A DNA stretch of 64,000 nucleotides, taken from the sequence record OR805292.1; one strand, 5' to 3'. The notes below the pieces were generated by a model, which was not told the DNA's origin, searched no databases, and saw only the letters and a list, made by a program, of their open reading frames with translations. Numbering within the stretch: the first letter of the stretch is position 1; the number at the start of each line of letters is the position of its first letter. Positions 5,859 to 60,858 of this stretch are shown here, in pieces. The position numbers and the translations under genes were made by a program.

Positions 5859-5931
5859 ATATAACCTAAAATAGCCAAAAAGTACAACTACAATGTTGGA
5901 AGGACGGCAGTATTATAAAAAAGGACATTTT

Positions 5932-6177
5932 ATGACAAAACCATTCGATATTTCTAAATTTAGAAAAGATATTACTAAAAGTATCACTGGCATTAGTACA
6001 GGATTTAATGACCCAACTATTTGGATTAGTACCGGCAACTATACTCTTAATTATCTCATTAGTAGCGACTTTAATAAAGGCGTACCTATGGGTAAAGTAA
6101 CTATGTTTGCTGGCGAGTCGGGTTGTTTGCCTGAAACTGCTAAAGTGAAAATTAGACTATCTAAGAAGCAATCTTAA
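5932..6177 (+). CDS. uvsX: UvsX/RecA N-terminal extein (64 aa) fused to 17-aa split-intein N-fragment
   Basis: ISTGNYTLNYLIS...GKVTMFAGESG, then CLPETAKVKIRLSKKQS-stop (Cys1 at 6124); AAGGA SD before ATG 5932. Confidence 0.92.
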   Translation: MTKPFDISKFRKDITKSITGISTGFNDPTIWISTGNYTLNYLISSDFNKGVPMGKVTMFAGESGCLPETAKVKIRLSKKQS

Positions 6178-6186
6178 CTGTCCAGT

Positions 6187-6226
6187 GTCTCCGTCGAGGA
6201 TAAATACTTTTATCTAAAACGGAGAC
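6187..6226 (+). promoter_or_regulatory. RBS-sequestering hairpin with embedded late promoter, upstream of the homing endonuclease
   Basis: GTCTCCGT 6187-6194 pairs with ACGGAGAC 6219-6226 (covers the GGAGA SD); inner stem 6198-6204/6209-6215; TAAATA at 6201-6206. Confidence 0.75.
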
Positions 6227-6229
6227 TTT

Positions 6230-7663
6230 ATGGGAAATTACAATGTTCTTTCTACAAAAAACTTTAAGAAGCTATGTAATGAGTTAAACATAGTAACGAT
6301 ATCAGAAAAGTACATTTCTGATATACGTAAGATAGAAGATTCTGCTAAGAGCAAAGTGGATTCTGCATCTCAGCGTATGATATTAACTATGATAACTGTG
6401 AAAGTTCCCGACTTATATGATGCATATAACAGATACTATCAGCTCAGAACAGATGGTATTAGTACAAAAACTCAAGACAGTATTTCTTATATTTTTGGAA
6501 AAGACTTCCTCGAATCTGTTAATTTACTAATCAGTAATAGATATAAAACTGCATTCCGTAAAGGAATGACAGTGGAAGAGGCATTTATAACACGTAATAA
6601 AGACTTTTCCAATAATGGTGTGTATTATAACCAGATGACTGATAAGCAAAAGAAACGTTTATCATTATTGCTTAGTGTGTATACACCAGAAAGGTTGGAG
6701 TTTTATAAAAAGACAATTTCGTTTTTTATTAAGTTAGATTTGACTAATTATGCAGGAAGAATGAAAAGACTGATGAAACTGGGATCTAGTACGTCTTTAT
6801 ATGCTAGCGTATTACGGTATGGTAAATCTGTCGGAAAAAGCACACATTCATCTGTATCTGCGGTAAAGAGAAACTATTTGCCTACTTCGATACAATATTG
6901 GATGGCAAAGGGGTTTGATGAAGATACTGCATTAGTGAAGATAAACGAACATCAACAGAAAGCAAGTGCCATGTCTTCCAAAAAACTAAAAGGCACTAGC
7001 GAATACTCTGTTCGATCAGTTGCATATTGGATTAAAAACGGGTATAGCGAAGAAGAGGCAAAAGGGAAAGTATCTAATATACAGAATACTTGGAAAAATG
7101 TATCTCAAGAAGAGCGTGATCGAAGAATAGAATCGTGGATGACTACAATGAGTCTTAAAACAGACGAGGAGAAATCTTTGATAAACCTTAAAAAAACTCA
7201 CAGCCCGGAAGGGATAATGGCAAGGACAAATTGCGATTATGATATTGCATTTAAGCAAAGCGTTGATTTTTTTAAGAAACGAAATAATTCTTCTAAAGTA
7301 TCTCAAGAACTATTTTGGGGAATTGCCGAGGATATCGATACCGATGGAGTTTACTTTTCTGAACTAAACTACGAATACCCTGTTATGGGGAAAATAGTAG
7401 ATTTCTATGATTCTAAAAGCAAAACAGTAATCGAATTTTATGGAAACTTTTGGCATGCAGATAGTACATATACTGATGACACACTGATATATGGAAAAAC
7501 TGCTAAAGAAATAAGAGAATCGGACATTTACAGAGAAACGTTAATTAGATCATCTGATTTGGTTAGTGATTTTATAGTAGTTTGGGAAAAGGACTTTAGG
7601 AAGAATCCGAAAGAAACAATTAAAAATTTAGTTAATATTTTAAATAATAAAAGGAAATTTTAA
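6230..7663 (+). CDS. Free-standing Vsr-like (PD-(D/E)XK, DUF559-type) homing endonuclease inside the fractured uvsX
   Basis: C-terminal VDFY...VIEFYGNFWH...D...VVWE motif, YW..G..E..A repeats, located between the split-intein halves. Confidence 0.8.
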   Translation: MGNYNVLSTKNFKKLCNELNIVTISEKYISDIRKIEDSAKSKVDSASQRMILTMITVKVPDLYDAYNRYYQLRTDGISTKTQDSISYIFGKDFLESVNLLISNRYKTAFRKGMTVEEAFITRNKDFSNNGVYYNQMTDKQKKRLSLLLSVYTPERLEFYKKTISFFIKLDLTNYAGRMKRLMKLGSSTSLYASVLRYGKSVGKSTHSSVSAVKRNYLPTSIQYWMAKGFDEDTALVKINEHQQKASAMSSKKLKGTSEYSVRSVAYWIKNGYSEEEAKGKVSNIQNTWKNVSQEERDRRIESWMTTMSLKTDEEKSLINLKKTHSPEGIMARTNCDYDIAFKQSVDFFKKRNNSSKVSQELFWGIAEDIDTDGVYFSELNYEYPVMGKIVDFYDSKSKTVIEFYGNFWHADSTYTDDTLIYGKTAKEIRESDIYRETLIRSSDLVSDFIVVWEKDFRKNPKETIKNLVNILNNKRKF

Positions 7664-7666
7664 TAA

Positions 7667-8938
7667 ATGGAATACATCGAAAAGGAAGTAACAGTTAGTG
7701 AACTGAAGTCTCTCTACAGTAGTAATGAATACGAAATTGAGTTAGACACACCAGATGGCTGGCAAAAACTGGGATCTTGGTTCGATAAAGGCCCTCTTAG
7801 TATGGTGACGGTAGAAACGCAGGATGGGTTAGTTACTAGATGTGCAGTAAACCATATGATCGAAGTGGTAGACGGATCGGAAACTTTTTGGACACTTGCA
7901 AAAGACTTGTACGAAGGCCAACAAGTGCTTACTGTAAACGGTGTCTCAACAATTAGTTCTGTAACTGAAAGTGGCATCGAAGAATGTTTCGATTTCGAAA
8001 TACTCCACGAAAATCATCGTTACTATGGTGATGGATTCTCTTCTCACAATAGTGGCAAATCGTATATAGTATCAGGAAACATTGTAAAAGATGCACAAGA
8101 AAAGGGAATTTTTGTTGTATTACTTGATTCAGAAAATGCACTCGACGAATCTTGGTTACATGCACTAGGTGTTGACACCGGACCGGAAAAAATGTTACGC
8201 ATCTCTGTATCGATGATAGATGATGTAGCAAAAATTATTAGTGATTTTGTTAAAGATTACAAGACTAATTATGCCGAACTACCTAACAATGATCGACCAA
8301 AGGTGCTTTTTGTTATTGACTCGCTCGGAATGTTATTGACACCAACGGAAACTGCACAATTTCAAAATGGTGATATGAAAGGAGATATGGGCAGGAAAGC
8401 AAAACAATTAAAAGCATTGATTTCTAACTGTACAAATATGTTCGGCAACTTAGACATAGGCCTTGTTTGTACTAACCATACATATGCATCTCAAGATTTA
8501 TTTCAGCCTGACGCTGTAATTTCGGGTGGCAGCGGCGCAGTCTATGCGGCGTCAATTGTAGTGGCAATGCAAAAGTTAAAGTTAAAAGAAGACGAAGCAG
8601 GTAATAAAATTTCTGAAGTAGCTGGCATTCGTGCAGTATGTAAAGTTGTGAAATCTCGATATGCAAAGCCGTTTGAGACAGTAAAAGTAAATATTCCATA
8701 TGATACAGGTATGAGTCCAATATCGGGTCTATTTGACTTGTTTGAAAAAACAGGTAAACTTGTAAAACAAGGCAATAGATATAAGTACATAACCAAGGAT
8801 GGTACTGAAATGCTGTATTATAGGAAAGAATGGAATGATTACGATAAACTAAAAGTAATTATGAATGAATTTACAGACGAAGACCTAGGCAATGTCGTAG
8901 AAGTGGAAGAGGGTCATTTAGAAGAGTTCGATGAATAA
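7667..8938 (+). CDS. uvsX: 128-aa split-intein C-fragment fused to UvsX/RecA C-terminal extein (295 aa)
   Basis: Block B CAVNH, block F CFDFEI, terminal HN (8045-8050) followed by Ser; then SGKS, LLDSENA, VIDSLG, TNHTY, ISGGSG RecA motifs. Confidence 0.93.
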   Translation: MEYIEKEVTVSELKSLYSSNEYEIELDTPDGWQKLGSWFDKGPLSMVTVETQDGLVTRCAVNHMIEVVDGSETFWTLAKDLYEGQQVLTVNGVSTISSVTESGIEECFDFEILHENHRYYGDGFSSHNSGKSYIVSGNIVKDAQEKGIFVVLLDSENALDESWLHALGVDTGPEKMLRISVSMIDDVAKIISDFVKDYKTNYAELPNNDRPKVLFVIDSLGMLLTPTETAQFQNGDMKGDMGRKAKQLKALISNCTNMFGNLDIGLVCTNHTYASQDLFQPDAVISGGSGAVYAASIVVAMQKLKLKEDEAGNKISEVAGIRAVCKVVKSRYAKPFETVKVNIPYDTGMSPISGLFDLFEKTGKLVKQGNRYKYITKDGTEMLYYRKEWNDYDKLKVIMNEFTDEDLGNVVEVEEGHLEEFDE

Positions 8939-10766
8939 ATTATGCGAAACAGATCGTATTAATATTATCAAATTACACTTCGATGATTTAAAATCTGTAT
9001 CTGAATTAAAGCAAATATACGGAGTCTCTTATGATGTCATTAAAACCATCATAAGAGATGAAACGAATCGTCTACCGTTGCAAGAAACTGATATAAAAAT
9101 TTTGAAATTTAAAAAACTTGTTTCAAAGGAGTTGTTATTTGAATTACATGTAATTAAAAAACAATCATTTAATGAAATAAGAAAGACTTATAAGATTAAT
9201 GAACTTCATTTAAAACAAGTGTTTAATGATTACGGAATACCAATTGAAAAGTGTTTATATACTGCTACTAACAAGAAGCGTAAAACAAAAAAGCCTGAAG
9301 ATTTTACTAAAGACTTTTTCGAACACTTAGTATATAACGAAAGACGAACAATTAGTTGGATAAAAAATAATTATAACTTTAATTATGAAGAACTAAAACA
9401 TCATTTAACACATTTAAAAATCGATTATACTAATTCGTTGCCACCTGCTGTAAAACATCAACAAGATAAAATATCTAGAGAAACCCTAGCAGAAGAATTA
9501 AAAATTAAATCTATTGTTGATATAATAAATGAATACGGAATTTCGAGAACTTATGTAGAAAGCGTTATAAAAGAATACAATATACAGTATTTTACAAAAC
9601 CGAAACATTCTATATTAAGTGGTAAAGAATCAGAAATTTATCGGATGTATTATGATGAATGTATGACTACATACCAAATAGCAGAAAAATTGGGAGTATG
9701 TCAATACACCATATGGAAAATAATGGCAGATAACGGATGGAAAACACGAGAACCGATTAAAAAAATTGATTTGATTTGGAATGATATAAAAGAAGAAGTT
9801 GTTAAATTAATAGACAACGGTTATACATTAGCTGCTTTATGTGAAAAATACGAAATAACATCTATTACTGAAAAGTTAATAGAAGAAGGTATAAAATATA
9901 CAAAGGGAAATATTTCTTCTGGTCATGCAGAAATATCTGAATATGTGCGTTCATTGGGATTTAATGTAATCGACAATGATCGTACTATTATATTTCCGCG
10001 AGAAATTGATATTTTTATTCCCGAACTTAACATAGGAATAGAATACAACGGATTATATTTTCATAGCACACGAACAGAAGGAAATGTAACAAAGCATAGA
10101 GAAAAATATAGCATATGTAAACAAAAAGGTATTCGTTTAATACAAATTTTTGAAGATGAATTTATTCATAAGAAAGAACTAGTAAAGAGAAAATTAGCGC
10201 ACATTTTAGGAAAATCTAATAATAAATGTTATGCAAGGAATTGTATAGTTAAAGAAATATCGGTAGCAGACAAACGAAATTTCTTTAAAAAATATCACAT
10301 ACAAGAAGATTCTGCATCCTCGTATGCATATGGATTATATTATGATAATGAATTGGTTTGTGCTATGTCTTTTCTTAAAAAGAAGAAATGTACAGAATTA
10401 GTTAGATATGCATCTTCTATGCACGTGATAGGCGGATTTTCTAAGTTGTTGAAATATTGTATTAATAATAACAAAATAGATGTTATAAACACCTATGCTG
10501 ATCTCAGATGGTCGAATCCGACAAATAATGTATATGTAAACAATGGGTTTGATATACTGTATGAGACTGATTTTAATTACACTTATGTGAGTAAAGAGGA
10601 TTTTTCAAAAAGGCTTAATAGGCAAAAATTTATGAAACACAAGTTGAAAAACATTTTATCAGATTTCGATAAATCATTAACAGAAGAAGAGAATATGAAA
10701 AATAATGGATTTTATCGAGTATACGATGCTGGCCATTTAAAATTGCAATATAAGGTTAATAAATGA
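8931..10766 (+). CDS. Putative homing endonuclease: HTH repeats, Vsr-like nuclease and C-terminal Hef/Mom-like (GNAT-fold) domain
   Basis: EIDIFIPELNIGIEYNGLYFHS...LIQIFEDE nuclease motif; C-terminal ELVRYAS...GGFSKL...TYADLRWS...VY...GF. Confidence 0.7.
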   Translation: MNKLCETDRINIIKLHFDDLKSVSELKQIYGVSYDVIKTIIRDETNRLPLQETDIKILKFKKLVSKELLFELHVIKKQSFNEIRKTYKINELHLKQVFNDYGIPIEKCLYTATNKKRKTKKPEDFTKDFFEHLVYNERRTISWIKNNYNFNYEELKHHLTHLKIDYTNSLPPAVKHQQDKISRETLAEELKIKSIVDIINEYGISRTYVESVIKEYNIQYFTKPKHSILSGKESEIYRMYYDECMTTYQIAEKLGVCQYTIWKIMADNGWKTREPIKKIDLIWNDIKEEVVKLIDNGYTLAALCEKYEITSITEKLIEEGIKYTKGNISSGHAEISEYVRSLGFNVIDNDRTIIFPREIDIFIPELNIGIEYNGLYFHSTRTEGNVTKHREKYSICKQKGIRLIQIFEDEFIHKKELVKRKLAHILGKSNNKCYARNCIVKEISVADKRNFFKKYHIQEDSASSYAYGLYYDNELVCAMSFLKKKKCTELVRYASSMHVIGGFSKLLKYCINNNKIDVINTYADLRWSNPTNNVYVNNGFDILYETDFNYTYVSKEDFSKRLNRQKFMKHKLKNILSDFDKSLTEEENMKNNGFYRVYDAGHLKLQYKVNK

Positions 10767-13454: not shown

Positions 13455-13958
13455 TTGAAAATTTTATTAACCGAAAATGAATCATACGAATTAGATAGAG
13501 TCCCAGACGACATAGAGGATATACGGTATTGTATATTAGATTGTAATGATAAATCTAATGTAGATTTTTACTTTTTGCCTCTTATATTTTTAGAAAGTTT
13601 TTATTCTCCCGCAGTTGTCCTTAAGATAGGAAAGTACAGTATACAAATGCCGTTAGATTGGTCTATACTAGTATGCGACGAAGAATATTCTGATCTAGAA
13701 GTAGTACCACTTACTAGTCTAAATGATAGGGGGTTTCATACAATAGTATTTAATCCACTAAAACACATGGTGCCTGTTCCTTCTGAAATAACAATAACTA
13801 GTGTATTTACTGAAGTAAAATGGTATTTCCCTAAATTAAAAAGTGGTGCTGTCCTAGTTATTCCTTTAGAAGACGGACCTAATCCGAATTGTGCATTGTT
13901 TGTAAAAGAAGGGAATAAAATTCCTGATCCTATAGATATAGCAGAGTTATTTAAATAA
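13455..13958 (+). CDS. Conserved hypothetical protein
   Basis: 167-aa ORF, TTG start with SD, coupled to the next gene. Confidence 0.6.
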   Translation: MKILLTENESYELDRVPDDIEDIRYCILDCNDKSNVDFYFLPLIFLESFYSPAVVLKIGKYSIQMPLDWSILVCDEEYSDLEVVPLTSLNDRGFHTIVFNPLKHMVPVPSEITITSVFTEVKWYFPKLKSGAVLVIPLEDGPNPNCALFVKEGNKIPDPIDIAELFK

Positions 13959-14425
13959 TGGCAGAAGAAAGCATTTTACCGCTTTGGATGGAATTACAAG
14001 CATTAGATTATAATGATAGAGATTTTTATGACAAGTTAACTGATGAACAGAAAAAAGTATTTTCATCGTGGATTATAATGAGATATTCTAGTAATATAAT
14101 CGGTGATAATGCAGATTGGGGTCTTATAATGACCAATGATATTGTAAATGTAGATTTTTCATTAATGTATAAACATCCTAAACTGCAATGGATGCTATTG
14201 TCGTTGTGTGGAACTGGAAGAAAAGAACAACGTAAATGGATTGCCCCAAATAAAAAGAAAAAAAAGAATCCGAGGAAAGAATTTATTTTTAAAATTCATC
14301 CAAACGCAAAAGATGACGAAATTGATATGCTTGCAGATTTGTACACTGATGCAGAATTAAAGGATATTATGTTATCCTACGGATATGAAGATAAAGAAAT
14401 AAAAGATATTTTAAAGAAGAAATAA
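13958..14425 (+). CDS. Putative clamp-loader small subunit (T4 gp62-like)
   Basis: WIIMRYSS...TNDIVN...KHPKLQW...KWIAP pattern resembles gp62; replication-gene context. Confidence 0.45.
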   Translation: MAEESILPLWMELQALDYNDRDFYDKLTDEQKKVFSSWIIMRYSSNIIGDNADWGLIMTNDIVNVDFSLMYKHPKLQWMLLSLCGTGRKEQRKWIAPNKKKKKNPRKEFIFKIHPNAKDDEIDMLADLYTDAELKDIMLSYGYEDKEIKDILKKK

Positions 14426-14438
14426 TTCTAGTAAGTAT

Positions 14439-15146
14439 ATGCAAGCATCTAAGAAAAATAAAAAGGCAACATCGATGGCAAAGTGCGAGTTTTGTAGTAA
14501 AGAATTTAAGTCAGAACGAACAATAGCTGCTCATTTGTGTGTTAAAAAGAAGAGGTTTGCAGAAAAAGACACAGTCGGGTCTAGACTGGGATTTAGGGTA
14601 TTTCAGCGATTCTACGAACTAACTACTTCTTCTAAAACACCTAAATCTTTTAGAGAATTTATTGATAGTAAATTTTATATAGATTTTGTTAAATTTGGAA
14701 GACACCTAATAGATATTAATCCTATTAACACAGATGAATACATAGATTTCATAATAAAGAACGCTATACCGCTGTCTGATTGGAAAAAAGACTATGTATA
14801 TGTAAGATATCTTAAAGAATATACTCAGAAAGAACCTGCACAAAAAGCACTAGAACGAACTATAATCGAGATGGGCACTTGGTGTACTGAAAATAATGTA
14901 GATATTGTAGATTTTTTTGAAAAAGTTAATACAGTAGAGGCAGTATATCTTATTAAATCAGGAAAGCTTAGTCCGTGGGTATTATATCTGGCATCTTCTT
15001 CTGATAAATTGTGGGTTAGAATAAATGAAGAACAAGAAAAATTTATTCAAACTGCTGTAGATTTTGATTGGTGGCAAAAGAAATTTATTGCAAATAAGGA
15101 TGATGTTGACTTTATAGTGTCTGTATTGACAGAGGCTAAGTTGTAA
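14439..15146 (+). CDS. Hypothetical protein with N-terminal C2H2-like zinc finger
   Basis: CEFC-x12-HLC motif. Confidence 0.6.
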   Translation: MQASKKNKKATSMAKCEFCSKEFKSERTIAAHLCVKKKRFAEKDTVGSRLGFRVFQRFYELTTSSKTPKSFREFIDSKFYIDFVKFGRHLIDINPINTDEYIDFIIKNAIPLSDWKKDYVYVRYLKEYTQKEPAQKALERTIIEMGTWCTENNVDIVDFFEKVNTVEAVYLIKSGKLSPWVLYLASSSDKLWVRINEEQEKFIQTAVDFDWWQKKFIANKDDVDFIVSVLTEAKL

Positions 15147-15147
15147 T

Positions 15148-15750
15148 ATGGCAAAAGTGGTTACTGATGTTGATATTGACGTAGCAGATAGGTTAACAGT
15201 TTTGTCTGGACTACAACACATATCTGCTAAATTAGACGGAGTGGGAAAGAAACATTTATCTGGTGTATATTTTCAACCTATTCCGTTTGATCCGGAACAA
15301 AATATGAGCAACATAGATTATAAAGTTGCAGAAGAATTAGGCTACATGAAGATTGATCTTCTTAACGTGAGTATATACGAACAAGTTAGATCGGAGGAAC
15401 ATCTAAAGAAATTAATAGATAAAGAACCTAACTGGTCTTATTTTGAACATAAACAGATAGTTCAAAATTTATTTCATTTAGGAAATTATGCTGATCTGGC
15501 AGTAGGAATGAAACCGAAAAGTGTAGAACAGTTAGCAATGTTGCTGGCTGTTATACGTCCGAGTAAGTATCATTTACAATATAAACCTTGGGATATTATT
15601 GCCAAAACTGTGTGGGATAAGCCCAGCGACGGGTCATATCATTTTAAAAAAGCACATGCCATTAGTTATGCACTTGCAATTGTTGTTCAGTTGAATTTAT
15701 TAGAAGAAGAAGCAGAACAAGAACCCGATCCATTTAAGTTATTTTCCTGA
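15148..15750 (+). CDS. dnaE: Miniature DnaE (Pol III alpha)-like catalytic fragment, C-terminal half of a split core
   Basis: TDVDID (PDFDVD), KHLSGVY, GYMKIDLL (KFDFL), IRP, FKKAHAISYA (FNKSH.AAY) in the correct order within 200 aa. Confidence 0.82.
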   Translation: MAKVVTDVDIDVADRLTVLSGLQHISAKLDGVGKKHLSGVYFQPIPFDPEQNMSNIDYKVAEELGYMKIDLLNVSIYEQVRSEEHLKKLIDKEPNWSYFEHKQIVQNLFHLGNYADLAVGMKPKSVEQLAMLLAVIRPSKYHLQYKPWDIIAKTVWDKPSDGSYHFKKAHAISYALAIVVQLNLLEEEAEQEPDPFKLFS

Positions 15751-16132
15751 TTAAAGATACTTGTCGTCTTTTTATTCTCTTTTTGAGCATATTGTTAAGA
15801 GAAGTACATGGTCCGAAAACTATTTTTATATCTTTGTTTACTAGGGTTTTTAAGCAATATCTAAATTCTGCCATTTCATTTGGCATGAATATATTTATTG
15901 GTAATATCCTAGAAGATTCCCACCACCAACAGTCACCACATTGAAGAAATATATCTTTGTGTTGACTGTTTTTTAATGATTTAAAATCATAAAAACTTAT
16001 ATATTTGTCATCCGAGTTTTGAATAATTCCTATATAAAAATTTTCTAAGTGTTGTATGCCACTCAAAAATGGAAATTTTTCAGATAATTCTGCTAACTCT
16101 TGATCTATTGTATTATTATTTGTGTTGTCCAT
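15734..16132 (-). CDS. Hypothetical protein
   Basis: 132-aa ORF; minus-strand TAAATA at 16152-16157 and purine-rich SD. Confidence 0.65.
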   Translation of the reverse strand: MDNTNNNTIDQELAELSEKFPFLSGIQHLENFYIGIIQNSDDKYISFYDFKSLKNSQHKDIFLQCGDCWWWESSRILPINIFMPNEMAEFRYCLKTLVNKDIKIVFGPCTSLNNMLKKRIKRRQVSLIRKIT

Positions 16133-17093: not shown

Positions 17094-18122
17094 GTGCGCG
17101 TGATTAGCGAACTTTTAAAACAAGAAATAACTTCTAGACTTCCGTATTTAAAGCCAGGAAACAAAGGATGGTTAGTTTGTAATTGTCCTTTGTGTGTCGC
17201 TATGGGTACAACTGCTGATAAGCGAAAACGGTTCGGTGTTATGTTTGAATCGGATGGAACAATAGGGGTCCATTGCTTTAACTGTACATTTGTAACAAAA
17301 TGGACTCCGGGGGCTCTGATAGGAGAGAAAATAGAGTTCCTTCTACGACATATAGGTACATCCGATGATGATATTCGTAAACTCAAATTCCAGGCATTTA
17401 GAGAGAAAGAAGCAGGAGACATATTTAAAACTCCCGAACTAGAATTAAGTATTAAAACTAATTGGACTACTACTAGTCTTCCTAAAAATTCTAAACCTAT
17501 ATTAGAATGGTTAGAAATATCTCCTAATGATCCCAATCTTCTTAAATGTGCAATGTATGCCTTATCTAGAGGATTTCCGGATATGTCTAATATATACTGG
17601 TCACCCTCTCAGAAATTTTTATGGAATAAACGAATAATACTTCCGTTCACATATAATGGAAAAGTTGTAGGATATTGCGGAAGATATTTTGAAGAACAAC
17701 CAAATGAATTAGAAATAAGAAGATATGAAAATAGATTCCCTGAACATTTTGTGTATGGGTTAGATTCCCAAAGATCCTACAATAGAAAATATGTTATACT
17801 AACGGAAGGAGTAATAGATGCTATAATGGTAGATGGAGTATCTACCATGGGTTCTGTAAGTAAACATCAAGCAAATATAATAAACTCGCTAGGCAAAGAA
17901 ATAATAGTATTGCCTGATTTTGATAGTAACGGCAGTCATTTAGTAGATTCTGCTTTAGAATATAACTGGTATGTATCATTTCCTAATTGGGATAATAATA
18001 TAAAAGATGCTAGCGAAGCATCCCAAAAATATGGAAGATTACTTACAGTTCAGAGCATTATATACGGTATCGAACGGAATTCTACTGCCATACGAATTAA
18101 AAGAAAAATAAAAGGAATATAG
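17094..18122 (+). CDS. dnaG: DNA primase (Zn finger plus TOPRIM; T4 gp61/DnaG-like)
   Basis: CPLC...HCFNC, LTEGVIDA, LPDFD, KDASE; true start probably GTG 17100. Confidence 0.88.
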   Translation: MRVISELLKQEITSRLPYLKPGNKGWLVCNCPLCVAMGTTADKRKRFGVMFESDGTIGVHCFNCTFVTKWTPGALIGEKIEFLLRHIGTSDDDIRKLKFQAFREKEAGDIFKTPELELSIKTNWTTTSLPKNSKPILEWLEISPNDPNLLKCAMYALSRGFPDMSNIYWSPSQKFLWNKRIILPFTYNGKVVGYCGRYFEEQPNELEIRRYENRFPEHFVYGLDSQRSYNRKYVILTEGVIDAIMVDGVSTMGSVSKHQANIINSLGKEIIVLPDFDSNGSHLVDSALEYNWYVSFPNWDNNIKDASEASQKYGRLLTVQSIIYGIERNSTAIRIKRKIKGI

Positions 18123-18123
18123 T

Positions 18124-19563
18124 GTGAAACAAAACAAAGACGTAGTAAAGGATTATAATACTGGCGTAGAAGATTTGTTTATAAAATTTTTCTTAACTGA
18201 CCCAGAATTGTTTATTAGATGCCGATCTATAATACAACGAGACCACTATTCGGATAAGATTAACCAAAAAGTTATAGATTTTTTAAATGAACATGCAGAT
18301 AAACATAGTACTCTTCCTACTGTAGAACAAGTATCGGCCATAACAGGAAAATCATTTGAGTTATTAGATAACATACATGATAGCCATAAAAATTGGTTTT
18401 TAGAAGAATACGAAACATTTGCTAGGCATAAACAACTAGAGAATGTAATATTAGAGTCTCCTGATTTATTAGTTACCGGTCGGTACGGAGAAGTTGAACA
18501 AAAAGTTAAGAATGCAGTTTCTATTGCATTAGTTAAAGATTTAGGTACTGATTATTTCGGAGATCCACTATCTAGACTTAATGCCATTAAAGACAGAAAA
18601 TCGTTAGTGTCAACTGGCATGAAAGATTTAGATGCAAAACTGTACGGCGGTTTTGAGCGCGGAGCTCTAAATATTTTTGCAGGACAATCAGGCGCTGGCA
18701 AATCTATATTTCTACAAAATATAGGATTAAATTGGGCTATAGCAGGACTTAACGTAGTTTACCTTAGTTTAGAATTAAGCGAAAACCTATGTTCTATGCG
18801 CATAGATTCTATGAACACAGGTATTGATACAAAAGAAGTTTTACGCAGGGTAGATGATGTAGCTATAAAAGTTATTGAATCTAAAAAGAAAACTAAAGGC
18901 TCCCTTCGAATTAAGCAATTGCCTAACGGTTGTACAGCCAACGATATACGTTCTTATATAAAAGAATACGAAATTCAAACAGGATTAAAAGTAGATGCAA
19001 TAATGTTAGACTATTTGGATTTGTGTATGCCTATAAGTAAAAAGGTAAGTCCATCGGATCTGTTTGTTAAAGACAAATACGTTTCTGAAGAATTAAGGAA
19101 CTTAGCAGTCGAGCTTCAAATTCTATTAGTCACTGCATCGCAGTTAAACAGAAATTCACACGAATCTGTAGATTTCGGACATGAACACATTTCTGGAGGT
19201 ATTTCTAAGATTAATACTGCCGATAATGTAATAGCTATTTTTACAACGCAAGCTATGAGAGAAAATGGAAGATATCAAATTCAATTTCTTAAAACACGTT
19301 CGTCGTCGGGTGTCGGGCAGAAAGTAGATCTTGCGTTTGATCAAAGAACACTAAGATTATCTGATTTAGATCCAGAACAAGCTAGCGCATTATCTGAGAA
19401 TACAAGGAGTGTTATTGATAAACTCCGCGCAGATAGGTCATTAGACACACCTAATAATAAAGATACTCATGTACAAAAGACACCTGCTATTGAACAAAAA
19501 CCGGTAGAATCTATGGTAGAAAAAAGTGCCCGGCTTCGTAATCTACTTAGCGGCAACAGATAA
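18124..19563 (+). CDS. dnaB: Replicative helicase (gp41/DnaB-like)
   Basis: GQSGAGKS, SLELSE, LDYLDL, TASQLNR, KTRSS. Confidence 0.93.
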   Translation: MKQNKDVVKDYNTGVEDLFIKFFLTDPELFIRCRSIIQRDHYSDKINQKVIDFLNEHADKHSTLPTVEQVSAITGKSFELLDNIHDSHKNWFLEEYETFARHKQLENVILESPDLLVTGRYGEVEQKVKNAVSIALVKDLGTDYFGDPLSRLNAIKDRKSLVSTGMKDLDAKLYGGFERGALNIFAGQSGAGKSIFLQNIGLNWAIAGLNVVYLSLELSENLCSMRIDSMNTGIDTKEVLRRVDDVAIKVIESKKKTKGSLRIKQLPNGCTANDIRSYIKEYEIQTGLKVDAIMLDYLDLCMPISKKVSPSDLFVKDKYVSEELRNLAVELQILLVTASQLNRNSHESVDFGHEHISGGISKINTADNVIAIFTTQAMRENGRYQIQFLKTRSSSGVGQKVDLAFDQRTLRLSDLDPEQASALSENTRSVIDKLRADRSLDTPNNKDTHVQKTPAIEQKPVESMVEKSARLRNLLSGNR

Positions 19564-39658: not shown

Positions 39659-40348
39659 GTGTCGTTAAACAAAACTAAAACTGATGCCGAACTAGGCAAA
39701 AAAGTACAGCAATATTTAATCCAACAAGGAGTAGAAACTCCTATGCAAGAGCAAACTCTAAACGTTAAAGAGCGGATAGATAAAATTGAATCTCATTTTG
39801 TTGAAATTATGAATGCACTTGCGTTGGATCTTTCCGACGATAGTCTTGCAGAAACGCCTCGTCGAGTAGCAAAAATGTATGTATCTGAGATATTTTATGG
39901 ATTGGATTATGAGGCATTTCCTAAATGCACCACTATTGAAAATAAATTTAATGCAAATGAAATGGTCTTAGTAAAAGATATAGATTTATATTCTCAGTGC
40001 GAACATCATATTTTACCAATAATTTCTGGATCATCTTCCGGTCGAGGCGGAATATCAGTTGCTTATATTCCTAAAAATAAAGTAATAGGTCTCTCTAAAT
40101 TAAATAGAGTAGCAGAATTTTTCTGCAAGCGACCTCAAGTTCAAGAACGACTCACATTACAAATATTTCATGCATTACGGTATATTCTGGAAACAGACGA
40201 TGTTGCTGTTTTAATTAACGGAAGGCATCTGTGTGTGGAATCTAGGGGTGTAGAAGATACAAGTTCGAGTACGATAACTTCTAAATTAAGTGGTGCATTT
40301 AGCAACGATCCTGCCACCCGTGCAGAATTTATGTCTCTTGTAAAATAA
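39659..40348 (+). CDS. folE: GTP cyclohydrolase I
   Basis: ETPRRVAKMY, SQCEHH, GLSKL.R, RPQVQERLT, HLCVESRG. Confidence 0.96.
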   Translation: MSLNKTKTDAELGKKVQQYLIQQGVETPMQEQTLNVKERIDKIESHFVEIMNALALDLSDDSLAETPRRVAKMYVSEIFYGLDYEAFPKCTTIENKFNANEMVLVKDIDLYSQCEHHILPIISGSSSGRGGISVAYIPKNKVIGLSKLNRVAEFFCKRPQVQERLTLQIFHALRYILETDDVAVLINGRHLCVESRGVEDTSSSTITSKLSGAFSNDPATRAEFMSLVK

Positions 40349-40352
40349 CAAA

Positions 40353-40385
40353 AACTACTATGGATAGGACCTATCCATAGTAGTT
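40353..40385. repeat. 33-bp near-perfect palindrome between folE and queD
   Basis: AACTACTATGGATAGG-A-CCTATCCATAGTAGTT, no U-tract. Confidence 0.9.
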
Positions 40386-40415
40386 ACACATAGCATATTA
40401 ATAAGGAATATAAAA

Positions 40416-40934
40416 TTGTGGCAGATTAATAAAAGTTTCAGTTTTGCATATGCTCATAGAGTCCATAATCAACACTTAGATGCAGATTTAGTTGAAGACA
40501 CCAAATGCAAATGCAGGCATTTACACGGACATACAGGTAAAGTAGTTATTCATTTAACTGGAACTTCTTTAGTAAACGGCATGGTAACTGATTTTAAGCA
40601 TTTAGGTTTTCTTAAAAAATTTATAGATGACGTAATCGACCATAAGTTTATTATAGATGCAAACGATCCTAATTTTAGTAAGATAACCAATGCATCTAAA
40701 TATTCTACTATAAGTTTTGAGCACTATGGAATATTCGATACATCTGAAGAGACAGTAGAACATGAAAAGGAACATGCAGATAGTTTTGTAATAGTAGATT
40801 TTGTTCCTACTGCAGAAAATTTAGCTAAATGGATCTGGGAATATGCTGAAAGCATTTTAGAACAAAAAGGTATAACTGTTTCTAAAGTAGAATGGTGGGA
40901 AACTGATAAAGCTTGTGCAACATATATTGCATAA
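40416..40934 (+). CDS. queD: 6-carboxy-5,6,7,8-tetrahydropterin synthase
   Basis: AHR, C.HLHGH, GMV.DF, DH, PTAEN, WWET. Confidence 0.9.
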   Translation: MWQINKSFSFAYAHRVHNQHLDADLVEDTKCKCRHLHGHTGKVVIHLTGTSLVNGMVTDFKHLGFLKKFIDDVIDHKFIIDANDPNFSKITNASKYSTISFEHYGIFDTSEETVEHEKEHADSFVIVDFVPTAENLAKWIWEYAESILEQKGITVSKVEWWETDKACATYIA

Positions 40935-40951
40935 TATAAAGGTAGATATAA

Positions 40952-42178
40952 ATGTCGAAAGAAACATGCTCTTATTGCAATAAAGGCAAAGATGATGTGT
41001 CTAAGTTGTTTCGTAGCCCTGCTAAATATGGATCAAATGTATATATATGTGATCAGTGTGTAACTCAGTGCAACAATTTTTTAGAAACTGCTGAAACAAA
41101 TGATCGGGAATCTAATAAATTAGAAATAAAATACACACCCGAAGAACTAAAGGAATTGCTAGATAAAGACATTGTAGGGCAAGATCACGCAAAAGAATTA
41201 CTAAGTCTAGCAGTGTATAATCATTATAAACGTGTAAACTATAACACTACTGAACACGATGTAGAGTTATCTAAATCTAACATAATGCTACTGGGACCCT
41301 CAGGTAGCGGTAAGACATTTTTAATATCTAGTATATCTAAATTGTTAAACATACCTTTTGTTTCTGTAGATTCTACTTCGCTAACAGAGGCAGGATATGT
41401 CGGTGATCATGTAGAGACTATATTTACTAGATTAATTGCAGAAGCAAATGGTGACATAGAACTAGCACAACGTGGAATCGTGTTTATAGATGAAATAGAT
41501 AAGAAGCGTTCTAAAAAAGGAACAAATTCTGCAGGATCTGATGTTTCCGGCGAGGGTGTCCAACAGTCTTTACTTCGGGTGTTAGAAGGAACAACGATTA
41601 AATTAGAACTAAATTCTAACAGTATGTTTAGTCCTAGACAGGAAATTATGTTTGACACAACTAATGTTTTGTTTATAGTTGGCGGCGCATTTATAGGACT
41701 AGATGCAGTAATAAATAAAAGACTTAGTTCTACTAAATCTCAAATGGGATTTGGTTCCGAAGCCGGTAAACCCATAGAAGGTAGTTTATTCTATGTAGAA
41801 CCGGAAGATTTGTATACATACGGTTTTATAAGAGAATTTGTAGGAAGATTTCCTGTTCTTATTGCGTTTCATGATGTAACAGAGACTATGCTTCGTCGAA
41901 TTCTAGTAGAGCCTAAAAGTTCTATACTTAAACAATACCAAACTATGTTTAAATTAGATAACATTGAATTAGAATTCGATGAAGATTTTATAAAATCTGT
42001 TGCTACTACAGCGTTTAATAGGAAAACAGGCGCTCGTGGTTTAAGAACTATTTTAGAAAAAGAACTATCTAGTATAGCATATAGATTGCCTTCTATAAGA
42101 CGAGAAGGGTTTAGCAAGATTATTATACACGAACTAGGAAAACATAATTTCATAAAAGGGCAAAATGAAGACATTTAA
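40952..42178 (+). CDS. clpX: ATP-dependent Clp protease ATPase subunit
   Basis: CSYC...CDQC Zn domain, GPSGSGKT, TEAGYVG, DVSGEGVQQ.LL, MGF loop, TGARGLR. Confidence 0.96.
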   Translation: MSKETCSYCNKGKDDVSKLFRSPAKYGSNVYICDQCVTQCNNFLETAETNDRESNKLEIKYTPEELKELLDKDIVGQDHAKELLSLAVYNHYKRVNYNTTEHDVELSKSNIMLLGPSGSGKTFLISSISKLLNIPFVSVDSTSLTEAGYVGDHVETIFTRLIAEANGDIELAQRGIVFIDEIDKKRSKKGTNSAGSDVSGEGVQQSLLRVLEGTTIKLELNSNSMFSPRQEIMFDTTNVLFIVGGAFIGLDAVINKRLSSTKSQMGFGSEAGKPIEGSLFYVEPEDLYTYGFIREFVGRFPVLIAFHDVTETMLRRILVEPKSSILKQYQTMFKLDNIELEFDEDFIKSVATTAFNRKTGARGLRTILEKELSSIAYRLPSIRREGFSKIIIHELGKHNFIKGQNEDI

Positions 42179-42371
42179 TATAATTAGTGGTCTTACTGTA
42201 GAAGTAAGACACGATAACTTTAACCAAGCACTTAGAACTTTTACTAAAAAGGTTCAAAATTCAGGAAAATTAAAAGAAGTTAGAGAACGCGAATTCTATG
42301 AAAAGCCTTCTGTAAAAAAGACAAAAGCTAAAAAAGCAGCAATTCAACGCCAGAAAAAGAAAAAAATATAA
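42165..42371 (+). CDS. rpsU: 30S ribosomal protein S21
   Basis: V.VR.D...ALR.F.KK....G.L.E.R.REFYEKPS.K. Confidence 0.92.
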   Translation: MKTFNIISGLTVEVRHDNFNQALRTFTKKVQNSGKLKEVREREFYEKPSVKKTKAKKAAIQRQKKKKI

Positions 42372-42373
42372 TA

Positions 42374-42709
42374 ATGGATCTTTGCAGGATTTTAAATAAT
42401 GAACTTACGTTTTGCAGAAATCGCAGGAATAAACTCTATTATGGCCTACGGCAATTGAATAAAGTTGACATCCCTGTAGATCCTGCAGATTCTTTACTTA
42501 TTTCCAGCATAAAACAGGATATAGAACATCTCCAATCGTATAAAGATGCTATATCCGAATGCAGCAGACTTGAACAACGTATAATCTGTATAGATAAAAC
42601 TATGCAGTATATCCGTCGGTATTGCAACCATAAGTTTGTGTATCACAATACTAATTATCATACAAATACAGATGCAGAAAAATGCATTTATTGCGGATTA
42701 ATAATTTAA
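42374..42709 (+). CDS. Hypothetical protein with C-terminal Cys/His motif
   Basis: C.H...C..C. Confidence 0.5.
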   Translation: MDLCRILNNELTFCRNRRNKLYYGLRQLNKVDIPVDPADSLLISSIKQDIEHLQSYKDAISECSRLEQRIICIDKTMQYIRRYCNHKFVYHNTNYHTNTDAEKCIYCGLII

Positions 42710-42710
42710 T

Positions 42711-43181
42711 ATGGCATATTTTTCAACTAAGAGATTTGGACCTATTTCCACTGGCCATCGTCAATGGAAAGATACGGGTCATTGCAGCAGAATACACGGC
42801 TACGGAAGAACAGTGAAGATTGTTTTTTCTGCTACTACATTAGATGATAAATTGTGGGTAGTAGATTTTGGTGGATTGAAAGATTTCAGGAAATGGCTGG
42901 AAGAACAATGGGATCATAATGTTTTAGTTGCATCTGACGATCCCAAGTTAAATATCCTTAAACAAATGGAACAAGAAGGTCTAGTTAAATTAAATATAAT
43001 GGATGTTAAAAAAGGCCATGGTCCCGGAATAGAAGGTTCATGTAAGCATCTGTTTGACTATTTAAATCCCATTATAGAAAAACATTCTGGCGGAAGATGT
43101 TGGGTCCATAGTATAGAAATATGGGAACACGAAAACAATTCTGCTATATATGAAACGTATAAGTCAACATTTAAAAGATAA
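42711..43181 (+). CDS. queD: Second QueD/PTPS-family protein
   Basis: GHRQW...HCSRIHGY, WVVDFGGLK, WDH, IWEHENNSA. Confidence 0.85.
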   Translation: MAYFSTKRFGPISTGHRQWKDTGHCSRIHGYGRTVKIVFSATTLDDKLWVVDFGGLKDFRKWLEEQWDHNVLVASDDPKLNILKQMEQEGLVKLNIMDVKKGHGPGIEGSCKHLFDYLNPIIEKHSGGRCWVHSIEIWEHENNSAIYETYKSTFKR

Positions 43182-50293: not shown

Positions 50294-51067
50294 ATGACAC
50301 CACGTTTAAAGGAATTACTAGAATCACTTATAATTTTAGATACAGAAACTACACATTTAGATACTCGTGTAGCAGAAATAATAGAATTAGGTATAGCGTC
50401 TTATACTAACAAATGGACTTATAGTAGTGAATTATTTAAACCCAGAGTTAATCATGCGCAAATAACTCCTAAAATAAGTTCTATAACTGGCATAACAGAT
50501 CGTATGGTAGAAGGAAAACCTACTTTTGCCGATGTAGTTGACCAATACAAATCTATTACAAACTGCCAACTAATCGTTGCACACAATGCTCCGTATGATA
50601 AAAAGGTACTAGAGAGATATGACATAGCATCTAGCACTAATTGGTTGTGTACTTTAAAACTTGCACGATATGCATATCAAACCGATCCTACTTTTGAAGA
50701 ATTTAAATTATCTTATCTAAGATATAAATTAATGTTAGATATTCCTGACGATTTCGTAGCGCATAGAGCAGGAGAAGATGCATATATGTGCGGTGTATTA
50801 TTGGAACGAATAGTAACTGATTTAGAGTCTAAGAATAAATTAGATAGTGATATACCGTATGCAGATCAACTTATAGAAATATCTAATAAGCCGTTAATGC
50901 TTTCGTCTATGCCATTTGGCAAACATAAAGATAAACCCTTAGATGAAGTTCCGATGGACTATTGGATTTGGGCATTAAATAATTTAGATGCATTAGACGA
51001 AACAAAACCCGAATATAATAGAGACTTAGCGTATACATTAGAACAATATTTGAGCGATAAGATATAA
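50294..51067 (+). CDS. DEDDh 3'-5' exonuclease (ExoX/DnaQ-like)
   Basis: LDTETT, AHNAPYD, HRAGED, C-terminal MPFGKHK. Confidence 0.92.
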   Translation: MTPRLKELLESLIILDTETTHLDTRVAEIIELGIASYTNKWTYSSELFKPRVNHAQITPKISSITGITDRMVEGKPTFADVVDQYKSITNCQLIVAHNAPYDKKVLERYDIASSTNWLCTLKLARYAYQTDPTFEEFKLSYLRYKLMLDIPDDFVAHRAGEDAYMCGVLLERIVTDLESKNKLDSDIPYADQLIEISNKPLMLSSMPFGKHKDKPLDEVPMDYWIWALNNLDALDETKPEYNRDLAYTLEQYLSDKI

Positions 51068-58032: not shown

Positions 58033-58740
58033 ATGTTTGCTGACGTACAAGGGTTTTATTCTTTTAAAAGAAAATTTAAAACACACGTTCTTACTTCTGT
58101 ATTGAAAGAAACTGAATGGGAAATTATAATTGGATTCGTTCCTGCAAAGGATGCAAGCAACGGAGAAGATTTAATTGATTTTGAAGTTCAAAAAAATATA
58201 ATAGATTACTGGATTTCTAATTACGTAGAAGGCAGTATTATCGTCGATATGAGCGATACTAGAATTTCTATGTTGTATGATATAGCAGAAAATAACATAA
58301 TAGGTGTTCCTAGTTTTCCTAAAGATTTAAAAACACTAGCAATGGTTTTTCATTCTAAGATTTCATCTATAACAGATGGTAAGCTATCTATAGGTGACAT
58401 TATTATATCAGACGATAGTAATTTTAGTTACACATTCGGAAAACATGTAGATGAAATATATGATCTTCCTACAATAGACGATATGTTTCCTAATGAAGAT
58501 GAAAAACCTATATGGGACGTGCCGTGGTGGGATAGGGTTGATGTAGATACATTTGATTATGTTCCTGATTTAGAAAATCGTACATTAGAAGAAGTACAAA
58601 TGTCTGTTTGTACAAGACATGTGTTAAATGATATTAACGATAAGTTCGAAGCTGCAATAAAAGAAGAATTGGGTATAAATGTAGAAACTGAAGACAATGT
58701 TGTAGACATAGTTGATGTTTTAAATGAACGACAAATATAA
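58033..58740 (+). CDS. Conserved acidic hypothetical protein
   Basis: 235-aa ORF coupled to the DnaE-N fragment. Confidence 0.6.
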   Translation: MFADVQGFYSFKRKFKTHVLTSVLKETEWEIIIGFVPAKDASNGEDLIDFEVQKNIIDYWISNYVEGSIIVDMSDTRISMLYDIAENNIIGVPSFPKDLKTLAMVFHSKISSITDGKLSIGDIIISDDSNFSYTFGKHVDEIYDLPTIDDMFPNEDEKPIWDVPWWDRVDVDTFDYVPDLENRTLEEVQMSVCTRHVLNDINDKFEAAIKEELGINVETEDNVVDIVDVLNERQI

Positions 58741-59233
58741 TAGAAAAGAAATAACTATATCAACAGGCATAAATATCCTTTTGCAAGGGAACCAGCTGGG
58801 AGATCCACTCTTTGTTGACAACGAAGACATAAACAAGTATAATATGCACGTAGAACAAGTGTTAGGGTTGCATAAACTTAATACGACGAAACACTTAACT
58901 TGTTCTGTTGATGAATTTCATGAAAAAATGTCTTCAGAATGGTTTATGCCACCGGAATTTAAAAATATAGATATAGATTCTTTTATATTAAATTTATGTG
59001 ACACTAATGCACAAAAAGAAAGAGTATTAATGGAACTAAAACTCTTTCAAGAACGCGGTTTATACAATATGCTAAGATTTATGATATATTTTGTATCATA
59101 TATGAGGGAAAATTGTCTTATCTGGGGTGTGGGGCGCGGGTCTAGTGTTGCATCTTATGTATTATTTTTAATAGGCGTGCATAAAGTAGATTCACTAAAA
59201 TATAATTTAGATATAAAAGAATTTCTAAAATAA
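58724..59233 (+). CDS. dnaE: DnaE (Pol III alpha)-like N-terminal palm fragment of a split core
   Basis: ERV..EL.....GL..MLR.....V..MREN...WGVGRGSSVAS.VL.LIG...VDSLKYNL....FLK-stop matches DnaE just before the PDxDxD motif. Confidence 0.85.
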   Translation: MNDKYNRKEITISTGINILLQGNQLGDPLFVDNEDINKYNMHVEQVLGLHKLNTTKHLTCSVDEFHEKMSSEWFMPPEFKNIDIDSFILNLCDTNAQKERVLMELKLFQERGLYNMLRFMIYFVSYMRENCLIWGVGRGSSVASYVLFLIGVHKVDSLKYNLDIKEFLK

Positions 59234-59245
59234 AAGGAGTTAATT

Positions 59246-59587
59246 ATGCAAAAAAAATCTAACAATGGCGTATTAGTAGATATGGATTCACTCCGTATTC
59301 AAAATGAAAATGTAGTTGCAGTAGGAAACATGAATGTTAACGCAAAAGGCGACAAGTTAGGTCCAGGCGGCGAAATTATAGAAACTGCCGCCGAGCGAGT
59401 TCACAGATACCATTCTGAACATCAAACAGAAACTGCAACAGCTTCTATCAAACCCAATCTAGATGAAGAAGATGAGCACGAAGAAGTAGTACAACCTAAA
59501 AAAGTTACAAAAGAAAAACGTAAGAAAGAAATTATAGATGACGAAGGGAACATTACTATAACAGAAGATAGTAATAAAGATATTTAA
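59246..59587 (+). CDS. Conserved hypothetical protein
   Basis: VGNMNVNAKGD.LGPGG.I motif. Confidence 0.6.
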   Translation: MQKKSNNGVLVDMDSLRIQNENVVAVGNMNVNAKGDKLGPGGEIIETAAERVHRYHSEHQTETATASIKPNLDEEDEHEEVVQPKKVTKEKRKKEIIDDEGNITITEDSNKDI

Positions 59588-59928: not shown

Positions 59929-60858
59929 ATGAAAGAATTATGGACAGAAAAATATCGTCCTAAAAAAGTAGAAGATTACGTATTTACTAGTGAACAACAA
60001 AAGAAGCAAGTACAAAGTTGGATAGACAATAAAAGTATTGGAAATCTTTTGCTTACTGGTACACCTGGTGTAGGCAAAACTACTTTAGCTAGGTTACTGT
60101 TAAATGAATTAGGAGTAATGGATGCCGATTGTCTGTTCATTAACGCATCTAGAGATAACGGTGTAGATTTTATTAGGGACACAGTTAGTGGGTTTGCTTC
60201 TACATTACCGTTCGGCGATTTTAAATATATTATACTAGATGAGTGCGACCATTTAAGTATAAATGCACAAGCAACACTTCGTGGAATATTAGAGCAATAT
60301 TCAAATTCTTGTAGATTTATTCTTACAGGTAATTATCAAAATAAAATTATCCCTGCATTACACAGTCGTTGTCAGAGTTTCCACGTAGAAAAAGTAGATG
60401 AAGTCGAATTTACTACACGAATGGCGACTATACTTTTAAATGAAGGCATTAGTTTTGAATTAGAAGTGTTAGACGATTTCGTAAAATCTACGTATCCTGA
60501 TCTTAGAAAATGCATTAATGTACTTCAGCAGAATACAACTAGTGGTGTATTAGAAATACCGCAAGCATCTAGTGTAACAACAGAAGATTATAAGATTAGT
60601 GCAATTGCTCTGTTTAAAAATGGAAAATATTCCGAAGCAAGGCAACTTATATGTAAACAAATACGACAAGAAGAGTATGATGATATGTATAGGTTTATGT
60701 ATGATAATTTAGATCTTTGGGGTGATACTGATGATCAAAAAGATAGTGCAATTCTTATTATTAGAAATGGCTTATCTAAACACTCATTAGTTGCTGATCC
60801 GGAAATAAACTTATCAGCAACAATTATAGAACTAGAACGAAACAGACGAGGACTTTAA
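59929..60858 (+). CDS. Clamp loader ATPase subunit (gp44/RFC-like)
   Basis: WTEKYRP, GTPGVGKT, NAS, ILDECD, SRC, YPDLR. Confidence 0.93.
   Translation: MKELWTEKYRPKKVEDYVFTSEQQKKQVQSWIDNKSIGNLLLTGTPGVGKTTLARLLLNELGVMDADCLFINASRDNGVDFIRDTVSGFASTLPFGDFKYIILDECDHLSINAQATLRGILEQYSNSCRFILTGNYQNKIIPALHSRCQSFHVEKVDEVEFTTRMATILLNEGISFELEVLDDFVKSTYPDLRKCINVLQQNTTSGVLEIPQASSVTTEDYKISAIALFKNGKYSEARQLICKQIRQEEYDDMYRFMYDNLDLWGDTDDQKDSAILIIRNGLSKHSLVADPEINLSATIIELERNRRGL

Follow-up and report, generated by a model that had tools for sequence, protein, structure and literature searches.

Two distant genes of Pseudomonas phage Cassandra encode the conserved halves of a putative minimal DnaE-type DNA polymerase

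Pseudomonas phage Cassandra (OR805292.1; 288,167 bp; genus Wroclawvirus, PA5oct-like) is a jumbo myovirus that infects P. aeruginosa. [quoted passage not shown] The 169-residue N piece (58724–59233) carries the triphosphate-binding GS motif, and the 200-residue C piece (15148–15750) carries the catalytic aspartates. We consider it probable that the two proteins associate noncovalently as one minimal C-family (Pol III alpha/DnaE-type) DNA polymerase. A split minimal Pol III alpha is already known, having been described computationally in 2021 by Iyer et al. (Iyer, Anantharaman, Krishnan, Burroughs & Aravind, Viruses 13:63, PMC7824862). To that description we add residue counts mapped on the contacts of the E. 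coli ternary complex, estimates of selection, synteny statistics, unsplit forms of 375 to 376 residues, and, in the PA5oct group, a C-terminal tail resembling that of the phage's own family-B DNA polymerase (PolB).

Both open reading frames (ORFs) carry the label "DNA polymerase" in the sequence record, and the region compared is 98.8 to 99.3% identical to that of ten other PA5oct-like genomes. A previous reading of this DNA, made by a model from the letters alone (the sequence-only reading), had picked out the pair and given the gene coordinates, sizes and separation, together with the motifs DVDID, KHLSG, KIDLL and FKKAH (C-piece residues 7–11, 35–39, 68–72 and 166–170); all of these are confirmed, the motifs by translation.

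Homology and active-site residues of the two pieces

Over residues 96 to 168, the N piece scores 36.8 bits (E = 4.3e-9) with the Pfam family PF07733 (DNA_pol3_alpha), whose cut-off is 23.9, and it aligns without gaps with residues 322 to 392 of E. coli DnaE and 384 to 454 of the T. aquaticus enzyme. Upstream of this block, W73-F-M-P76 corresponds by motif to Y276-F-L-P279 of E. coli, so that the N piece spans approximately residues 276 to 392 of the DnaE palm; a family-specific head of about 70 residues precedes this part. Each chain was modeled singly with AlphaFold2. The N-piece model (mean predicted local distance difference test score, pLDDT, 86.2) retrieved Pol III alpha as all of its top seven matches in a Foldseek search of the PDB, with E-values of about 3e-3 to 4e-3, and 74 conserved columns superpose on 4iqj with a root mean square deviation of 1.9 Å. 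The model is least confident around the GS motif (residues 131–140, pLDDT 68) and predicts no strand there, which would be expected if this segment needed the sheet of a partner.

The C piece is recognized as phrog_11778, "DNA polymerase" (E = 1.7e-63), and more distantly as the full-length family phrog_405 (E = 7e-7). A profile built from 29 C pieces runs collinear with the M. tuberculosis and E. coli DnaE sequences at DxDxD, KxD, RP and YxFxKxH. In the AlphaFold2 model (pLDDT 90.4), the protein comprises a metal-binding palm strand, a thumb-base hairpin, a strand with the third aspartate, and miniature fingers, and each of the top 13 PDB matches given by Foldseek is a Pol III alpha. A single-sequence search of the PDB with the C piece returned nothing relevant. 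Pfam and NCBIfam gave no match either, and the link of this piece to DnaE runs only through profiles, PHROGs and structure comparison.

For residue numbering, E. coli DnaE was aligned to both pieces, and contacts were taken from a 2026 preprint on the cryo-EM ternary complex of E. coli Pol III (10.64898/2026.06.29.735100). Conservation was counted over alignments of 290 nonidentical C pieces and 183 N pieces. In the N piece, GRGSS (59132–59146) is the GS motif that binds the triphosphate, and its R138-G139-S140, equivalent to R362-G363-S364 of E. coli, is present in 183/183 sequences. In the C piece, DVDID (15166–15180) supplies D7 and D9, equivalent to the metal ligands D401 and D403; each is found in 288/290 sequences, the remaining two having gaps at these positions. 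D11, the counterpart of D405, is kept in 286. The third catalytic aspartate, D70 (E. coli D555), lies with K68 (K553) in KIDLL (15349–15363), and both residues are invariant (290/290). The sequence-only reading had asked whether this Asp triad is conserved among homologs, and the counts answer that it is.

The residues that would hold primer, template and nucleotide are nearly invariant too. KHLSG (15250–15264) contains K35-H36, the counterparts of K510-H511 on the primer-touching thumb-base strand (H36 in 287/290 and G39 in 286/290), and R137-P138 of RPSK (15556–15567) aligns, in the hidden Markov model (HMM) alignment, with R639-P640, which contact the templating nucleotide (287/290 and 289/290). 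In YHFKKAH (15637–15657), Y164, F166, K168 and H170 correspond to Y754, F756, K758 and H760 and are found in 253, 268, 283 (as K or R) and 285 of the 290 sequences. According to the preprint, K510-H511 of E. coli contacts the primer and its double mutant is dead, K553 touches a primer phosphate and K553A is null, and Y754, F756, K758 and H760 serve in base stacking, as a finger pivot and as a steric gate against ribonucleotides (10.64898/2026.06.29.735100). In that complex, the E. coli counterparts of the conserved phage residues come within 4 Å of dGTP, the primer or the templating base.

The point at which the palm is divided is fixed across the family. The N piece ends in KEFLK and a stop codon (59216–59233), and its terminus reads EFL followed by K or R in 182/183 sequences. 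E. coli DnaE continues at this point, FERFL-NPERVSMP-DFDVD, so that the metal-binding Asp motif stands just beyond the break. The C piece of Cassandra begins MAKVVT-DVDID, and family-wide the start lies one to nine residues ahead of DxDxD. DnaE homology extends through the final N-piece residue and resumes about six residues into the C piece. No Pfam intein match is seen in either, and neither has spare sequence at its termini, as expected from the clean, intein-free break that the sequence-only reading had described.

Between and beyond these motifs, the protein is strongly reduced. The stretch between D11 and H36 is only 24 residues long, where E. coli has 105 from D405 to H511; the phage value is close to the approximately 25 that had been estimated from the letters. 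Counted from the second metal ligand, D9 to H36 spans 27 residues (108 from D403 to H511), and D9 to D70 spans 61 (152 from D403 to D555). The deletion of the thumb that had been proposed on this ground holds for its helical part only. [quoted passage not shown] The C piece ends about 30 residues past the equivalent of H760, and neither piece matches the PHP domain family PF02811. Further pieces of DnaE (PHP, fingers, beta-binding or OB domains) were not found in the genome by a phmmer search with E. coli DnaE over 2218 ORFs, which at single-sequence sensitivity recovered the N piece only, or in the annotation of all 288 kb.

Distribution, selection and single-chain forms

Homologs of both pieces are numerous and uniform in length. 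A word-indexed search gave more than 1000 relatives of the C piece (1050), the best 120 of which, as listed, are about 185 to 216 residues long. For the N piece it gave more than 5000 (5465), of about 169 to 182 residues. An exhaustive HMM search gave 551 representatives of clusters at 50% identity. In the word-indexed search, N-piece relatives were about five times as many as C-piece relatives, and each scan of IMG/VR gave at least 600 matches. The highly conserved WGVGRGSSVASY words may account for the imbalance, or short contigs bearing pieces of bacterial DnaE may have been counted.

Both genes evolve under purifying selection. The pairwise ratio of nonsynonymous to synonymous substitution rates (dN/dS; Nei-Gojobori) is about 0.19 for each gene, a rough value since most pairs are near synonymous saturation. 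The two pieces also occur in the same phages. Among cultured phages, the two genes are near-equal in number genus by genus (Escherichia 34 and 34, Pseudomonas 11 and 11, Klebsiella 11 and 10, Erwinia 8 and 8, among others), and 30 accessions are common to the two samples of 60 matches, one drawn for each piece. Homologs of both were found in RaK2, in keeping with the mention, in the sequence-only reading, of similar fragments annotated in RaK2-like phages. The tests of selection and co-occurrence that it had proposed both came out in favor of a functional pair.

Co-occurrence is maintained without linkage. A distance of 31 to 43 kb separates the genes in the 121Q, RaK2 and PA5oct groups, and one of 180 to 220 kb in Atu_ph07 and Phosso; over RaK2, 121Q, Atu_ph07 and Phosso, the values run from 31 to 224 kb. 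We sampled 80 IMG/VR loci around the C piece and 80 around the N piece; in none of these 160 viral loci did the partner gene lie within 10 kb, and neither linkage nor an intervening mobile element was seen between the halves.

A small number of metagenomic contigs encode the two pieces as one protein. Three distinct single-chain forms (P0313, P0391 and P0392), 375 to 376 residues long and 78 to 81% identical to one another, occur on four contigs from four samples (L166, 1066–2193; L167, 519–1649; L168, 1827–2957; and L169, 1292–2422; GC content, 25–27%). In each, the pieces are arranged in the DnaE order, N then C, joined by a linker of about ten residues (...KEFIK-DNKEGIYNIA-DFDID...), and the fused gene is placed at the C-piece locus. 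By the "Rosetta stone" argument, natural fusions of this kind argue that the separate halves form one enzyme, and they are the strongest new argument that we can offer. In a quick tree of C pieces in which one of the three fusions was placed, it nests among split forms with moderate support (Shimodaira–Hasegawa-like approximate likelihood ratio test, 84–94), which hints that the single-chain form arose by secondary fusion. Together, conservation, selection, co-occurrence and fusion support the proposal, first made from the letters alone, of a two-chain DnaE palm core of about 370 residues with a Pol-beta fold and with no PHP, OB or C-terminal domains.

A proposed two-chain polymerase and its alternatives

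The active-site parts of DnaE are divided over both chains, and an active site formed by them would span the subunit interface. In the enzyme that we propose, the N piece would provide the first palm strand and the GS motif and would grip the triphosphate of the incoming deoxynucleoside triphosphate (dNTP). The C piece would hold the primer end with the D7/D9 strand, the K35-H36 thumb-base hairpin and the K68/D70 strand. Its miniature fingers would place R137-P138 on the templating base and stack Y164 on the incoming base, while H170 would bar ribonucleotides. Neither piece should be active by itself. The pair would be a templated, dNTP-specific polymerase of intrinsically poor processivity working beside the PolB replicase, and it might, for example, extend primers and hand them off, fill in the lagging strand or gaps, or act in repair.

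Several observations weigh against this proposal. The DnaE homology of the C piece is hard to see by standard means: it has no Pfam or NCBIfam match, and its profile matches solved DnaE structures with statistically weak scores (E = 0.045). The Foldseek E-values of both pieces are only about 3e-3 and their global TM-scores are low, the latter because the bacterial enzymes carry large insertions. Large parts of bacterial DnaE are missing. The index finger has about 23 residues against about 108 in E. coli, with no aligned equivalents of R709, K714 and K715; nothing is left of the helical thumb, of the ring and little fingers, or of the PHP, beta-binding and OB domains; and the column opposite E. 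coli R390 holds a glutamate (E166 of the N piece). The DNA binding of so reduced a protein may be too weak for polymerization without partners. In addition, the genome already encodes a complete PolB, which leaves the need for a second polymerase unexplained, and we found no biochemical or genetic study of the split mini polymerase in the literature searched.

That PolB is a T4-like enzyme encoded at 87805–93031 of Cassandra (L002:37805–43031), outside the window; whether the genome held a family-B polymerase elsewhere was a question that the sequence-only reading had raised. The enzyme is encoded by ORFs of 803 and 379 amino acids that carry N- and C-intein halves, the phage's only Pfam intein matches, and that are separated by a gene for a 560-residue HNH endonuclease; it has its own exonuclease domain. 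The sister phage MIJ3 is already known to have a PolB fractured in this way, by a split intein with a free-standing HNH endonuclease (Imam et al. 2019, PMC6892783).

The alternative that survives best, although we regard it as unlikely, is that the pair is an active nucleotidyltransferase other than a templated polymerase, one that adds untemplated tails, nucleotidylates protein or RNA, or makes a signaling nucleotide. The superfamily with a Pol-beta-like fold supports many nucleotidyltransferase chemistries. This versatility, together with the absence of a helical thumb and of the larger part of the fingers and with the presence of a replicative PolB, speaks for such an activity. Against it, K35-H36, K68, R137-P138, Y164 and H170 are all conserved, and these residues are relevant only to primer-template DNA or to the choice of dNTP; moreover, both genes sit within replication modules (56–77 of 80 loci). 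The sequence-only reading had left the chemistry broad, from primer extension and gap filling to addition of nucleotides to RNA or protein and synthesis of signaling nucleotides. From that list, the conserved contacts with primer, template and sugar favor templated DNA synthesis and make addition to RNA or protein and signaling nucleotides less likely.

More improbable still is that the two proteins are noncatalytic scaffolds or regulators of the replisome, of polymerase descent, that bind DNA, nucleotide or partners. The extreme reduction of the proteins, the presence of PolB, and the lack of any reported activity in the literature searched would suit such a role. Pseudoenzymes, however, normally lose their catalytic residues, whereas here D7 and D9 are kept in 288/290 sequences, K68 and D70 in 290/290, and R-G-S in 183/183.

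We give very little weight to covalent joining of the halves after synthesis, by protein trans-splicing or at the RNA level, in the manner of cyanobacterial DnaE. Split inteins do operate on the PolB of this phage type (PMC6892783), and the UvsX-like gene of the window is seemingly intein-interrupted. The two DnaE pieces, in contrast, leave no space for an intein, have no Pfam intein match, and have termini that are identical across hundreds of homologs. Finally, the idea that the ORFs are decaying, functionless fragments of a broken dnaE, which their shortness, their distance and the richness of the genome in homing endonucleases might suggest, is already refuted by more than 1000 C and 5000 N homologs of uniform length (551 cluster representatives), a dN/dS of about 0.19, invariant motifs, and synteny kept in 160 loci.

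Returning to the two-chain polymerase, a bolder form of the proposal is that the pair and the 375-residue fusions are the smallest self-sufficient templated C-family polymerase, one that lacks thumb helices and has its active site built over two chains; that in the PA5oct clade it is tethered to the clamp by a PolB-like tail; and that it acts in hand-off or gap filling between primase and PolB, much as DnaE and PolC share work in Firmicutes. We regard this as less likely than not, and as more doubtful than the association of the two pieces.

Candidate partners, genomic setting and known systems

The PolB-like tail is the hexapeptide PFKLFS (15730–15747), which follows an acidic linker at the end of the C piece. 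The C piece terminates in EEEAEQEPDPFKLFS, and the phage PolB's C-terminal part (L002:41892–43031) terminates in ...EEAAAHFDSLFGW; in both, an acidic linker is followed at the very C terminus by an F-x-(x)-L-F tail, which in PolB reads HFDSLFGW. T4-type polymerases bind their clamp through a C-terminal tail. By analogy, PFKLFS could be a sliding-clamp-binding peptide shared with PolB, although such a tail is clear only in the PA5oct subclade and a few scattered homologs, and most C pieces are without it. The earlier statement that the protein lacks processivity elements stands for the OB, beta-binding and C-terminal domains, which are gone, but may not extend to clamp binding in this phage.

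A stand-alone DnaQ/epsilon-like 3′-5′ exonuclease is encoded on the plus strand at 50294–51067 (PF00929, RNase_T, E = 3.4e-18; phrog_192, "DNA polymerase exonuclease subunit"). It is present despite the exonuclease domain within PolB, and its RaK2 homolog is located in the C-piece module. This protein is a candidate, and could be the proofreading partner of the mini polymerase.

Both pieces lie in conserved replication modules. A DnaG-type primase and a DnaB-type helicase (17094–19563, plus strand) are syntenic with the C piece, and primase and DnaB adjoin it in 67/80 and 56/80 viral loci, respectively. The full C-piece module consists of a UvsW-like helicase, three conserved proteins without assigned function, a conserved antisense gene, a structural-like protein, the primase and DnaB (56–77 of 80 loci). 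Near the N piece lies the gp44-like clamp-loader ATPase (59929–60858, plus strand), found there in 66/80 loci; this module further includes a conserved 113-residue protein without assigned function and a GroES-like protein (66–76 of 80 loci). A single-stranded DNA-binding protein, primase, DnaB-like helicase and clamp loader are all annotated in Cassandra. The replisome neighbors named in the sequence-only reading are thus found again, with the exception of a gp62-like gene beside the C piece: the neighbors there (phrog_11058, 11758, 11279 and 11637) have no assigned function and gave no informative Pfam, PHROG or NCBIfam match.

Five proteins without assigned function hold fixed positions beside the two pieces in 57 to 77 of 80 loci (13455–15146; 15734–16132, minus strand; and 59246–59587). 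They are proteins of 167 and 155 amino acids, a C2H2-like zinc-finger protein of 235 amino acids, the antisense-encoded protein of 132 amino acids, and the 113-residue protein downstream of the N piece. The stop codon of the zinc-finger gene ends 1 nt upstream of the C-piece start codon. We regard the five as candidate accessory subunits.

Other features of the window concern inteins and nucleotide chemistry. A UvsX/RecA-like gene at 5893–10766 is interrupted within its P-loop. Its first ORF ends ...FAGESG-CLPETAKV..., with an intein-like Cys start, and the third has about 128 extra N-terminal residues that end ...SSHN-SGKSYIV, an intein-like HN+S end. Between these parts stands a 477-residue ORF without assigned function, and a "homing endonuclease" ORF rich in helix-turn-helix motifs follows. 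From its sequence, the UvsX-like gene looks like a second fractured gene of this genome. A GTP cyclohydrolase gene and two QueD-like genes at 39743–43181, with a QueE-like gene at approximately 98.6 kb outside the window, suggest 7-deazaguanine chemistry. A homolog of ribosomal protein S21 is annotated at 42165–42371.

The split polymerase of Cassandra is the same entity as that of Iyer et al. In their paper, a minimal catalytic module of Pol III alpha, specific to phages, is divided into an NTP-binding N-terminal protein and a Mg2+- and template-binding C-terminal protein, encoded by distant genes in jumbo phages of group 2.2 that also carry a family-B polymerase (PMC7824862). All the features described there recur here: stand-alone, distant N and C proteins, PolB with a T4-like replication set, and no other Pol III domains; the homologs in RaK2 and Atu_ph07 were likewise recovered. 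Iyer et al. proposed that the module cooperates with PolB, either in making one of the strands or in repair, and that it is a model of the ancestral form; fused forms are not mentioned in the text as far as it was searched (PMC7824862). Weinheimer and Aylward (2022) noted that PF07733, the family of the N piece, marks a large cluster of jumbo phages. DNA polymerases are not mentioned in a 2026 jumbo-phage review or in the PA5oct omics paper.

With the bacterial DnaE structures compared (E. coli 2hnh and 5fku; T. aquaticus 2hpi, 3e0d and 4iqj; M. tuberculosis DnaE1 5lew), the phage proteins have in common the palm fold, GS motif, Asp triad, K-H thumb-base strand, RP contact, and the helix-loop-helix with Y-x-F-x-K-x-H. 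They differ in having 369 residues in two chains rather than 1160 in one, and in lacking the PHP, beta-binding, OB and tau-binding domains, the helical thumb, most of the index finger, as well as the ring and little fingers. In cyanobacteria, DnaE-n and DnaE-c are encoded by two distant genes as split-intein halves and are spliced to a full-length protein. The phage system resembles this one in that dnaE is encoded in two distant genes, but it is cut within the palm, between the GS and DxD motifs, has no intein, and yields a minimal product. The phage's own PolB is likewise made from two ORFs of the same genome; its halves, however, lie side by side around a homing endonuclease gene and bear Intein_splicing domains, whereas the mini-DnaE halves are 43 kb apart, with neither intein nor endonuclease between them.

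The natural single-chain versions offer an easy construct for a first biochemical test. If active, the pair would represent the irreducible core of a C-family replicase, in which about 370 residues keep the contacts with nucleotide, metal, primer and template. Such an enzyme would bear on the origin of C-family polymerases, on the use of two unrelated polymerases in one replisome, and on the engineering of very small polymerases.

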